From: Ylistrum balloti
Taxonomy: Eukaryota
Assembly (NCBI RefSeq): GCF_031769215.1
Contig: NW_026782274.1
Span: 186,001 to 250,000 of the forward strand
Direction of reading: 5' to 3'
Length of the DNA: 64,000 bases
Part shown: in pieces, positions 18,201-59,332 of the stretch
How the letters are laid out: each line of letters starts with the position of its first letter
Position numbering within the stretch: the first letter of the stretch is position 1
Position numbers and translations under genes: made by a program
The notes under the pieces: generated by a model
Databases searched by the model: none
The model's input: the letters and a program-made list of their open reading frames with translations, nothing else
What the model was told of the DNA's origin: nothing

Positions 18201-21200
18201 TCATCCGACAGTAGATTTATCTCCTTTGCAATTGTTTCAATGTTCTTTGGTGTTTGTGATTGAGCTACTTCAATGTCACTAAAATAGAAATGGTGTCATA
18301 GAATGGCATTTAAAATCATTTACAGCTATCATAATACAGTAATAGGTTTTTAAGGAAACAAAGAAGTAATATCGTCATGATTGTACAAAAAACACCCAAG
18401 TGAATAGCATTATTAAATACCTCATCAGATAAGATACAGTACAGCCAAACAATGAATTAAACCACATCATACAGCTGATTCATCCTTCTAAATCTCATCA
18501 GTGACGCTTAAGGGCCTAAATTCTCTTCAGAGTATAACACTTATGAGCAAAATTTCCATTAGCCTGGGGACTGGTCTCTTCAGAGTATAACATGAGCCTT
18601 ACCTGGGGACTGGTCTCTTCAGAGTTTAACATGAGCCTTACCTGGGGACTGGTCTCTTCAGAGTTTAACATGAGTGTTACTTGGGGACTGGTCTCTTCAG
18701 AGTATAACATGAGCCTTACCTGGGGACTGGTCTCTTCAGAGTATAACATTAGCCTTACCTGGAGACTGGTCTCTTCAGAGTTTAACATGAGTGTTTACTG
18801 GGGACTGGTATCTTCAGAGTTTAACATGAGCCTTACCTGGAGACTGGTCTCTTCAGAGTTTAACATGAGCCTTACCTGGGGACTGGTCTCTTCAGAGTAT
18901 AACATGAGCCTTACCTGGGGACTGGTCTCTTCAGAGTATAACATGAGCCTTACCTGGGGACTGGTCTCTTCAGAGTATAACATGAGCCTTACCTTCAGAG
19001 TATAACATGAGCCTTACCTGGGGACTAATCTCTTCAGAGTATAACATAAGCCTTACCTGGGGACTTTTCTCTTCAGAGTATAACATGAGCCTTACCTGGA
19101 GACTGGTCGCTTCAGAGTTTAACATGAGCCTTACCTGGGGACTGGTCTCTTCAGAGTATAACATGAGCCTTACCTGGGGACTGGTCTCTTCAGAGTTTAA
19201 CATGAGCCTTACCTGGGGACTGGTCTCTTCAGAGTTTAACATGAGCCTTACCTGGGGACTGGTCTCTTCAGAGTATAACATGAGCCTTACCTGGGGACTG
19301 GTCTCTTCAGAGTATAACATGAGCCTTACCTGGGGACTGGTCTCTTCAGAGTATAACATGAGCCTTACCTGGGGACTGGTCTCTTCAGAGTATAACATGA
19401 GCCTTACCTGGGGACTGGTCTCTTCAGAGTTTAACATGAGCCTTACCTGGGGACTGGTCTCTTCAGAGTTTAACATGAGCCTTACCTGGGGACTGGTCTC
19501 TTCAGAGTATAACATGAGTGTTTACTGGGGACTGGTCTCTTCAGAGTTTAACATGAGCCTTACCTGGGGACTGGTCTCTTCAGAGTATAACATGAGCCTT
19601 ACCTGGGGACTGGTCTCTTCAGAGTATAACATGAGCCTTACCTGGGGACTGGTCTCTTCAGAGTATAACATGAGCCTTACCTGGGGACTGGTCTCTTCAG
19701 AGTATAACATGAGCCTTACCTGGGGACTGGTCTCTTCTAACTTCAGAGTTCAGAGTAACATGAGCCTTACCTGGGGACTGGTCTCTTCAGAGATAACATG
19801 AGCCTTACCTGGGGACTGGTCTCTTCAGAGTATAACATGAGCCTTACCTGGGGACTGGTCTTCTTAACATGAGCCTTACCTGAGAGTTTAACATGGTGGG
19901 GACTGGTATCTTCAGAGTTTAACATGAGCCTTACCTGGGGACTGGTCTCTTCAGAGTTTAACATGAGCCTTACCTGGGGACTGGTCTCTTCAGAGTTTAA
20001 CATGAGCCTTACCTGGGGACTGGTCTCTTCAGAGTATAACATGAGCCTTACCTGGGGACTGGTCTCTTCAGAGTATAACATGAGCCTTACCTGGGGACTG
20101 GTCTCTTCAGAGTATAACATGAGCCTTACCTGTGGACTGGTCTCTTCAGAGTTTAACATGAGCCTTACCTGGGGACTGGTCTCTTCAGAGTTTAACATGA
20201 GCCTTACCTGGGGACTGGTCTCTTCAGAGTATAACATGAGCCTTACCTGGGGACTGGTCTCTTCAGAGTATAACATGAGCCTTACCTGGGGACTGGTCTC
20301 TTCAGAGTATAACATGAGCCTTACCTGGGGACAGGTCTCTTCAGAGTATAACATGAGCCTTACCTGGGGACTGGTCTCTTCAGAGTATAACATGAGCCTT
20401 ACCTGGGGACTGGTCTCTTTAGAATATAACATGAGCCTTAGCTGGGGACTGGTATCTTCAGAGTATAACATTAGCCTTACCTGGGGACAGGTCTCTTCAG
20501 AGTATAACATGAGCCTTACCTGGGGACTGGTCTCTTCAGAGTATAACATTAGCCTTACCTGGGGACTGGTCTCTTCAGAGTTTAACATGAGCCTTACCTG
20601 GGGACTGGTCTCTTCAGAGTATAACATGAGCCTTACCTGGGGACTGGTCTCTTCAGAGTATAACATGAGCCTTACCTGGGGACTGGTCTCTTCAGAGTAT
20701 AACATTAGCCTTACCTGGGGACAGGTCTCTTCAGAGTATAACATGAGCCTTACCTGGGGACTGGTCTCTTCAGAGTATAACATGAGCCTTACCTGGGGAC
20801 AGGTCTCTTCAGAGTATAACATGAGCCTTACCTGGGGACTGGTCTCTTCAGAGTATAACATGAGCCTTACCTGGGGACTGGTCTCTTCAGAGTATAACAT
20901 TAGCCTTACCTGGGGACTTGTCTCTTCAGAGTATAACATGAGCCTTACCTGGAGACTGGTCGCTTCAGAGTTTAACATGAGCCTTACCTGGGGACCATTT
21001 CTCTTCAGAGTTTAACAGAGCCTTAATGGTAGACAGCAGGTTACTAATAAATATTGGACTGGTATAGAGTCTCACTGAGTATAACATAAGCCTTACCTGG
21101 GGACAGGTCTCTTCAGAGTATAACATAAGCCTTACCTGGGGACTGGTCTCTTCAGAGTATAACATTAGCCTTACCTGGGGACTGGTCTCTTCAGAGTAAG

Positions 21201-57300: not shown

Positions 57301-59332
57301 ATCAAATTTCGTGGTTATTAAAAAAATCGTTAAAATGAAATCAACTTTCTAAAGCAAGGGTGCCAATCTGTGTGGACACTAAGTGATGAGGCTATTGATG
57401 ATTTTATGACCACCTGGATAAAGCATCCTATTCGAAACACTAGATTTTGTGGAAAGCCCCAGGAAATTTTAGGTCAAAGCTGGGGAATATAAAAAGAAAA
57501 TTTTGCTTTTAAATGTTCTTACAAATATCATGTTTGAGTCAGAGGTGATTTTTGTAGCAACGTACGTATCTGCGTTAAAGTTTACAGAACATAAGATATG
57601 AAATCTTTATGTTAAATTTCCATTGTGAAGTTGAAGAGGAGAAGTATCGCAATAAACTTTAATAAGTCGATATACAAAATAATTATCTACCGAAACGTTT
57701 AAACAAAATGATGGAAAACTGATTCTGCTTAAAAACGGAAGTTATTTTTTCTCTTTTCTTTTCTCGTTTTTTCACAAGCGTTGTAAGAGTGTTTTTTTAT
57801 CTTGTCGTTGCAGGGTTTTTCACGAGCGTTGTAAGAGTATGTTTTTTCTCTTGTCGTTGCAGGATTTTTCACAAACGTTGTAAGAGTGTGGTTTTTCTCT
57901 TGTCGTTGCAGGGTTTATCACAAACGTTGTAAGAGTATGTTTTTTCTCTTGTCGTTGCAGGATTTTTCACAAGCGTTGTAAGAGTATGTTTTTTCTCTTG
58001 TCGTTGCAGGATTTTTCACAAACGTTGTAAGAGTGTGTTTTTTCTCTTGTCGTTGCAGGGTTTTTCACGAGCGTTGTAAGAGTATGTTTTTTCTCTTGTC
58101 GTTGCAGGGTTTTTATGTTTTTTCTCTTGTCGTTGCAGGGTTTTTCACGAGCATTGTAAGAGTGTTGTTTTTTTCTCTTGTCGTTGCAGGATTTTTCACA
58201 AACGTTGTAAGAGTGTGTTTTTTCTCTTGTCGTTGCAGGATTTTTCACAAACGTTGTAAGAGTGTTGTTTTTTTCTCTTGTCGTTGCAGGATTTTTCACA
58301 AACGTTGTAAGAGTGTGTTTTTTCTCTTGTCGTTGCAGGATTTTTCACAAACGTTGTAAGAGTGTGTTTTTTTCTCTTGTCGTTGCAGGATTTTTCACAA
58401 ACGTTGTAAGAGTGTTGTTTTTTTCTCTTGTCGTTGCAGGATTTTTCACAAACGTTGTAAGAGTGTGTTTTTTTCTCTTGTCGTTGCAGGGTTTATCACA
58501 AACGTTGTAAGAGTGTGTTTTTTTCTCTTGTCGTTGCAGGATTTTTCACAAACGTTGTAAGAGTGTGTTTTTTCTCTTGTCGTTGCAGGATTTTTCACAA
58601 ACGTTGTAAGAGTGTTGTTTTTTTCTCTTGTCGTTGCAGGATTTTTCACAAACGTTGTAAGAGTGTGTTTTTTCTCTTGTCGTTGCAGGATTTTTCACAA
58701 ACGTTGTAAGAGAGTGTTGTTTTTTTCTCTTGTCGTTGCAGGATTTTTCACAAACGTTGTAAGAGTGTTGTTTTTTTCTCTTGTCGTTGCAGGATTTTTC
58801 ACAAACGTTGTAAGAGTATGTTTTTTCTCTTGTCGTTGCAGGATTTTTCACAAACGTTGTAAGAGTGTGTTTTTTCTCTTGTCGTTGCAGGATTTTTCAC
58901 AAACGTTGTAAGAGTGTGTTTTTTCTCTTGTCGTTGCAGGGTTTATCACAAACGTTGTAAGAGTGTGTTTTTTCTCTTGTCGTTGCAGGATTTTTCACAA
59001 ACGTTGTAAGAGTGTGTTTTTTCTCTTGTCGTTGCAGGGTTTTTCACGAGCATTGTAAGAGTGTTGTTTTTTTCTCTTGTCGTTGCAGGATTTTTCACAA
59101 ACGTTGTAAGAGTGTGTTTTTTCTCTTGTCGTTGCAGGATTTTTCACAAACGTTGTAAGAGTGTGTTTTTTCTCTTGTCGTTGCAGGGTTTATCACAAAC
59201 GTTGTAAGAGTATGTTTTTTCTCTTGTCGTTGCAGGATTTTTCACAAGCGTTGTAAGAGTGTGTTCTTTCTCTTGTCGTTGCAGGATTTTTCACGATTCA
59301 TGCGATCGCTGAGCCATTATACCGAAAATTAA
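54337..59332 (+). CDS. Uncharacterised secreted protein, paralog B (~156 aa)
   Basis: Exons 54337-54409 (signal peptide MFAVLLVGVLLYVSS), 54522-54572, 54813-55028, 57038-57120, 59285-59332; phases 1,1,1,0; 471 nt; exon 4 (83 nt) and exon 5 (48 nt) have the same lengths as in paralog A. Confidence 0.75.
57745..59294 (+). repeat. ~49-bp tandem array (~30 copies) made of the polypyrimidine tract/acceptor plus first 10 nt of paralog B terminal exon
   Basis: Unit ttttttctcttgtcgttgcag|GATTTTTCACaaacgttgtaagagtgtg; the last copy runs into GATTTTTCACGATTCATG (DFSRFM...). Confidence 0.92.

Follow-up and report, generated by a model that had tools for sequence, protein, structure and literature searches.

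Boundary minisatellites at four splice junctions in three genes of the scallop Ylistrum balloti

Four tandem arrays in a 64,000-nucleotide stretch of the Ylistrum balloti genome (contig NW_026782274.1, positions 186,001 to 250,000; this whole stretch is referred to here as the window, and all coordinates are positions within it) are exon-intron-boundary minisatellites, in which the terminal unit of the array straddles a splice junction. Two of them are in MTHFD1, which codes for the trifunctional C1-tetrahydrofolate synthase, at the donor sites of exons 10 and 3; the third is at the donor of exon 1 in an orphan gene (A), and the fourth is at the acceptor of the terminal exon in its paralogue (B). 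All are composed of head-to-tail units (39, 52, 46, and 49 bp, respectively), with copy numbers from 7 to 66, and they belong to the type of repeat known as a 'mirage' in amphioxus. An earlier, sequence-only reading of this DNA had presented the pattern as a new one, but the repeat type has already been described (PMC3087553, PMC3902484, PMC1557585); what the Y. balloti arrays add is a new phylum, together with an unusual density and copy number. We found no description of boundary minisatellites in molluscs in the literature.

Structure of the arrays

Arrays were called with Tandem Repeats Finder, and the terminal units contain 24 nt (exon 10), 54 nt (exon 3), 28 nt (gene A), and 10-12 nt (gene B) of exon sequence. 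At MTHFD1 exon 10, the repeating unit is formed from the last 24 nt of the exon and the first 15 nt of intron 10, and there are 62 copies of the junction; the sequence CAGGTAAGG is intact in 58 of these, the real one included. The array accounts for ~90% of intron 10, in which 280 nt of unique sequence remain at the 3′ end. If any of the downstream donor copies were spliced, the message would read AG/G TAA (a slash marks a splice junction here and in Table 1), with an immediate stop. Also within the array is a 32-nt segment (21025-21056, minus strand) that was copied from intron 9, with 97% identity to its 3′ end (21248-21278), and after this segment comes a 10-nt remnant of exon 10. This is a mosaic rearrangement, and it suggests that template switching has occurred.

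The template for the exon 3 array is the last 54 nt of the exon, a segment that itself starts with GTAGGT, and the seven copies are 74-93% identical to the exon. Their donors differ from one another: copy 1 has GTAGGT as at the real site, copies 2 and 3 have the stronger GTAAGT, and copies 4 and 5 have lost their GT; a GT is kept in three of the five clear copies beyond the real junction. Older and decayed copies of the exon 3 end are present deeper in intron 3. They include a 51-bp array of 3.3 copies (27416-27583), whose kinship to the exon 3 unit was judged by eye at ~65-70%, and a 30-nt fragment (27793-27822) that is 90% identical to the end of the exon. In the gene A array each unit joins 21-28 nt from the end of exon 1 to the beginning of the intron, and there are 11 copies of the junction; the GT is intact in seven of ten copies and has become AT in the other three.

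The gene B array is at an acceptor, and each of its units is a complete 3′ splice site, with a branch-point-like TTCAC motif, a polypyrimidine tract, and CAG/G. The AG is intact in all 31 copies, and the last copy is the annotated site, supplying the polypyrimidine tract, the AG, and the first 10-12 nt of the terminal exon. The sequence-only reading had described this terminal unit as overlapping the exon, and it does so, but just by these few nucleotides. The overlap is too short alone to score above shuffled controls, and we regard the array as junction-derived because of the exact register of its last unit rather than from a score for the exon match. Translation from the upstream acceptor copies would give DFSQTL, GFSRAL, or GLSQTL and then a stop, and a protein made with one of them would have this ending in place of DFSRFMRSLSHYTEN, and up to 1.5 kb of the array would become 3′ untranslated region. 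The automated NCBI model of gene B takes the last acceptor copy. The retention of a GT or CAG in many copies, which the sequence-only reading had also reported, is borne out by the counts in each of the four arrays.

Exons that host the arrays

Over 19.7 kb the window matches contig JAUZWB010001096.1 of the NCBI assembly GCA_031769215.1 without a difference, and it contains no runs of N. We mapped 22 exons of MTHFD1 on the minus strand, from ~29126 down to ~6257, using tblastn with relatives found through an exon search, and these exons are backed by matches to the Pfam families THF_DHG_CYH, THF_DHG_CYH_C, and FTHFS; the exon 3 piece taken alone (38 aa) scores 27.4 bits against THF_DHG_CYH, which is under the cut-off of 32.8. 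Joining exons 10 and 11 gives ...KRPVPSDIEV, as in the MTHFD1 relatives aligned by tblastn, and the protein runs on unbroken across the array junctions, as it does in distant relatives. For gene A, the NCBI gene begins at the same ATG as our splice model, and both its range and its length of 134 aa agree; for gene B, the spliced translation is the same as NCBI LOC132554384, residue for residue. The terminal exon of gene A (52082-52129, encoding NFRVFRRLLQQYVNG) is homologous to that of gene B. The two are of equal length and phase and have F2, F5, R7, L9, and Y12 in common, which argues that the annotated last exon of gene B is the ancestral one. All four host exons are thus supported as real, each with its coding copy intact, and the conserved protein results only from the exon-proximal splice site, judged by homology of MTHFD1 and of the A and B terminal exons. 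The positions that the sequence-only reading gave for the four arrays, with a terminal unit on a real exon edge in each, are confirmed by Tandem Repeats Finder, homology, Pfam, and the NCBI models.

Genes A (49305-52129) and B (54337-59332) are a tandem pair of divergent, paralogous four-exon genes with a signal-peptide-like start, and their products are 35-50% identical in the two middle exons. As to function, neither has a match to a Pfam family or an Atlas neighbour above noise, and the database searches returned no relatives besides each gene's own NCBI record. A search for MTHFD1 relatives with the exon 9 open reading frame (ORF) gave distant animals only, at no more than 81% identity and with no close scallop among them, and a search with the exon 3 ORF found none. 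A Logan contig (L002, SRR26445941) contains exon 15 of MTHFD1 from a related scallop at 1716-2027, with 95% protein identity, and the exon 15 contigs from this scallop are at most 2.6 kb long and stop short of the arrays.

Excess at splice junctions

With thresholds of at least 19 bp for the period and at least three copies, the window contains 16 arrays, and there are 55 splice junctions with which to compare them, all from this one window and its three genes. The sequence-only reading gave four junction arrays among about a dozen; the four stand, and the total does not. A terminal unit containing a junction is seen in 4 of the 16 arrays, where 1.1 would be expected from 20,000 random placements (P = 0.02), and the expectation falls to 0.5 (P = 0.001; also 20,000 placements) when the arrays are barred from covering the interiors of exons. 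Six of the 16 lie no more than 20 nt from a junction, against ~0.7 expected, with the sixth, which is 16 nt off, counted by hand. An excess over random placement had been proposed, and within the 64-kb window it holds.

The relationship of the donor arrays to their exons is not restricted to the terminal units. When units from the interior of each of the three donor arrays were compared with their own exons, the scores were 20, 36, and 21, with maxima of 15-17 for shuffled sequences, and they match the adjacent exon only. None of the remaining 12 arrays has units that match any exon in comparisons with shuffled controls.

Behaviour of the copies

The four arrays behave like ordinary minisatellites, with higher-order periods, homogenised middles, and decayed edges. 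Tandem Repeats Finder reports higher-order periods of 117 bp, 92 bp (in the gene A array), and 100/149 bp. At the edges of the gene A array the exon variant ACTATG is retained, and the copies in the middle have a derived ACTCTG in common, from which it follows that expansion took place inside the array and not at the exon, and in the exon 3 array it is the distal copies that have decayed.

The splice motifs are conserved no better than the rest of the unit, and there is no sign that they have been maintained. Five of the nine positions in the donor 9-mer vary, against 5-9 of 19 other positions in the unit when the copies are anchored away from the splice motif, and the GT is gone from two copies of exon 3 and three of gene A. 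A first profile, which was anchored on the donor, pointed to conserved decoy donors, but this was circular, and the signal was gone when the anchors were placed elsewhere in the unit.

Independent DNA and polymorphism

The locus is present as contigs in five DNA-type sequencing runs (the query was exon 2 of gene B), and the region compared was 27300-29300. In four runs from two studies the exon 3 array and its border are tiled by contigs at 99% identity or better, depth is approximately doubled in the unitigs common to the runs, and none of the joints bypasses the array. As four independent runs reproduce both the array and its border, the exon 3 array is not an assembly artefact. It looks alike in the four samples, although contigs of this kind cannot count copies.

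There are ~18 single-letter differences in 2 kb among the four runs, indicating an intron polymorphism of roughly 1%, and run X2 is without 18 nt at 27855. Just past 29228 (29228-29300), ~100 nt upstream of MTHFD1 exon 2, the contigs of all four runs switch to other letters; either the assembly and the resequenced samples differ in structure at this point or a repeat has its border there.

Comparison with known boundary repeats

The mirages of amphioxus are minisatellite-like tandem duplications of exon-intron boundaries in the Adh3, globin, troponin C, and PGBD5 genes. [quoted passage not shown] The scallop arrays are similar in having units made of an exon edge with its splice signal, in affecting both types of junction, in keeping the AG or GT in many copies, and, for the gene A array, in edge copies that have escaped homogenisation. 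They differ in host, which is a mollusc rather than a cephalochordate, in copy number (62 and 31, compared with 3-6 in the amphioxus globin mirages), and in unit length (39-52 bp, compared with 150-160 bp in the same globin mirages).

Several human genes also have a minisatellite in which the first monomer spans an exon-intron boundary, including F7 IVS7 (37 bp, 5-9 copies), IFI6/6-16 intron 2 (25 pseudo-sites), CBS IVS13, LMNB2, and PDGF (PMC1557585). In these genes the upstream site is the main or the sole one to be spliced; 5′-to-3′ scanning in F7 picks the donor lying furthest upstream, even against stronger pseudo-sites, and IFI6 and CBS also make use of the nearest two pseudo-donors (PMC1557585). 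As in the scallop donor arrays, an authentic donor is followed by intronic pseudo-donors, and the stronger pseudo-sites of F7 have a parallel in copies 2 and 3 of the exon 3 array with their stronger GTAAGT. However, the human cases are isolated loci, whereas the scallop has four within 64 kb, and the gene B acceptor array falls outside the F7 rule.

Other arrays in the window

Arrays of all kinds make up 17.8% of the window (Table 1). Near the donor of MTHFD1 exon 6 there is a decayed array of ~19 bp in which some units read CAGTGTACTCAC, resembling the exon 6 junction. Its match to exon 6 is not significant in the comparison with shuffled controls, and it may be an old array derived from a junction, the fifth of its kind. 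The 41-bp array of 66 copies and the 79-bp, 26-bp, 43-bp, and 38-bp arrays are simple minisatellites within introns or in flanking sequence. Together the 43-bp and 46-bp arrays constitute ~74% of gene A intron 1. A long ORF (685 codons) for C2H2 zinc fingers is present at 41084-43138 on the minus strand, and its 84-bp finger periodicity was called as arrays by Tandem Repeats Finder at 42003-42780; these are coding repeats and not minisatellites.

Table 1. Boundary arrays, host exons, and other arrays in the window
Feature	Position	Strand	Description
Exon 10 array (MTHFD1)	18563-21198	-	39 bp, ~66 copies, 91-93% matches (Tandem Repeats Finder)
Exon 3 array (MTHFD1)	28026-28440 (Tandem Repeats Finder 28065-28434)	-	52 bp x 7.2
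Older, decayed copies of exon 3 end	27416-27822	-	Deeper in intron 3
Gene A array	49323-49846	+	46 bp x 11.4 (Tandem Repeats Finder)
Gene B array	57745-59294	+	49 bp, ~31 copies, 71% of gene B intron 3
MTHFD1 exon 10	21175-21233	-	59 nt; acceptor AG; ends ...LKRPVP, CCCCAG/GTAAGG; donor at 21174
MTHFD1 exon 3	28387-28500	-	114 nt; VGGREDS...PRTSTQEQ, GAACAG/GTAGGT; donor at 28386
Gene A exon 1	49305-49350	+	MRALLVLLGTMSLVLG; signal-peptide-like; phase 1; donor ACTGG/GTACGT
Gene A, all exons	49305-49350, 50714-50941, 51535-51617, 52082-52129	+	Orphan gene, 134 aa
Gene B, all exons	54337-54409, 54813-55028, 57038-57120, 59285-59332	+	Orphan gene, 139 aa
Gene B terminal exon	59285-59332	+	DFSRFMRSLSHYTEN, then stop
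~19-bp decayed array	22739-22956	-	Begins at or no more than 20 nt from exon 6 donor (CAG/GTACAC); parsed by eye
34-bp array	17960-18093	-	3.9 copies; begins 10 nt past exon 11 donor; no exon sequence
41-bp array	7912-10627	-	66 copies; last MTHFD1 intron; not exon-derived
79-bp array	6987-7774	-	10 copies; last MTHFD1 intron; not exon-derived
43-bp array	50109-50625	+	12 copies; gene A intron 1; 99% matches, very young; ends 88 nt short of exon 2 acceptor
38-bp array	59836-60259	+	11 copies; 97% matches; ~500 nt downstream of gene B stop; no exon-derived sequence

Discussion

We lean, with modest confidence, towards the explanation that the arrays are tolerated by-products of frequent local duplication at existing junctions and are harmless by virtue of the exon-proximal site. 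A segment of 39-52 bp straddling an existing junction would have been duplicated in tandem, and the duplicated unit would then have expanded into the intron by minisatellite dynamics, through either slippage or unequal exchange. Judging from homology and the gene models, productive splicing probably stays at the exon-proximal copy, and the arrays would persist because this site still yields a correct mRNA. For the donor arrays, tolerance may be accounted for by the scanning rule of F7, if the analogy applies. The acceptor array belongs to a fast-evolving orphan gene and precedes its terminal exon; a mistaken choice of site there would affect no more than the 15 C-terminal residues and would be unable to set off nonsense-mediated mRNA decay (NMD), and the position of the array seems to fit such a tolerance filter. 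The copies themselves are presumably neutral.

Several observations weigh against this explanation. A neutral process with uniform seeding predicts that ~4% of arrays straddle a junction, and the figure here is 25%, such that something beyond tolerance is needed. The use of the first donor and the last acceptor is deduced from homology and an automated gene model, and nothing in standard scanning from the branch point would favour the last of the 31 equal acceptors in gene B. The independent contig comparison covers one array of the four, that of exon 3. The junction excess, which is roughly five-fold or greater, is unexplained by tolerance, and a bias in either origin or retention is a possible fit.

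Such a bias could come from a mutational process focused on exon-intron borders that seeds the arrays, which would refine rather than exclude the explanation by tolerated by-products; we consider it a real but lesser possibility. Candidates for the process are template switching or out-of-register repair where an exon of high homology meets a highly polymorphic intron, and microhomology, as with the two GTAGGT words 54 nt apart at exon 3, one inside the exon and the other at its donor. The excess of arrays both containing junctions and within 20 nt of them is in accord with it, as is the presence over ~1 kb of intron 3 of exon 3 end copies of several ages, which imply repeated events. The copy of the intron 9 tail in the exon 10 array points to template switching, and polymorphism is high, with differences of ~1% in 2 kb among the four samples. 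However, no motif is common to the four units, and the youngest and most uniform copies of gene A are in the middle of the array and not at the exon edge, from which we conclude that growth of this array has not been junction-driven; moreover, the statistic comes from one window and three genes.

The sequence-only reading had also suggested that the arrays may be decoys that could tune splicing and NMD. They could act as sinks for U1 or U2AF, or give rise to isoforms that are targeted by NMD or differ at the C-terminus, with copy number setting expression. In favour of this, 57 exon 10 copies reproduce the authentic donor perfectly and 30 decoy acceptors are intact; the exon 10 copies would give an immediate TAA and the gene B copies alternative C-termini without NMD, and the use of the nearest two pseudo-donors in human IFI6 and CBS (PMC1557585) provides a precedent. 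Nonetheless, we find a decoy function improbable, and the suggestion is not supported by the behaviour of the copies. Conservation of the splice motif does not exceed that of other positions in the unit, with the donor 9-mer as variable as the rest and the GT decayed in several copies, and recent expansion accounts for the high identity of the copies. The arrays are also unlike one another in unit length, effect on the reading frame, and age, and the same type of repeat leaves splicing undisturbed in amphioxus and in F7 (PMC3087553, PMC1557585).

It is very unlikely that the pattern is a product of chance or of assembly, with satellites that happen to abut exons or arrays that have been inflated by mis-assembly. 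The window is certainly very rich in repeats, the loosest null model gives a P of only 0.02, and the independent contig comparison bears on the exon 3 array rather than on the two longest (exon 10 and gene B). Against this, the units carry the coding letters of the adjacent exon itself, the exon 3 array is reproduced in four independent runs, and the unit variants fall into regular higher-order patterns that are typical of real arrays.

Still less credible is that the arrays record the creation of introns. In the Rogers model introns are reportedly gained through tandem duplication across AGGT, with both experimental and natural cases, and the scallop arrays resemble this in that a duplicated AGGT-type segment yields usable splice signals; moreover, nearly all of the 52-bp unit at exon 3 comes from the exon, inside which the present donor hexamer, GTAGGT, also occurs. 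However, unlike in the model, the scallop introns predate the duplication and only lengthen, with no new intron position, and in none of the four is the intron essentially equivalent to the duplicated segment: intron 3 is ~3.5 kb with much unique sequence, intron 10 keeps unique sequence at its 3′ end, part of each 39-, 46-, and 49-bp unit occurs in the intron and not in the exon, and the MTHFD1 protein reads through the junctions without interruption, as in its distant relatives. This agrees with the sequence-only reading, which had taken the arrays to be amplifications of existing junctions on the supposition that both MTHFD1 introns are old and shared with human. An origin from RNA circles or lariats was also considered and set aside on the anatomy of the units, which include exon as well as intron letters.

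Gene models that cross such arrays warrant caution in annotation, as they hinge on which copy the software chooses, the C-terminus of gene B being an example. If the excess holds genome-wide, this would be the second animal lineage, after amphioxus, in which boundary minisatellites are common. Speculatively, and we would not put this strongly, exon-intron borders may be the preferred target of a duplication process in scallops, as in amphioxus, perhaps tied to a very high level of heterozygosity, such that repair slips at the boundary between conserved exon and divergent intron. The arrays would then be an ongoing source of intron growth, of alternative protein ends (such as DFSQTL rather than DFSRFMRSLSHYTEN in gene B), and of raw material for new exons. 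Should the pattern be true genome-wide, the arrays would provide a natural series of 5′ and 3′ splice sites, with up to 62 donors and 31 acceptors, for learning the rules of splice choice outside mammals, and a test of whether duplication at junctions feeds intron growth and new exon ends.

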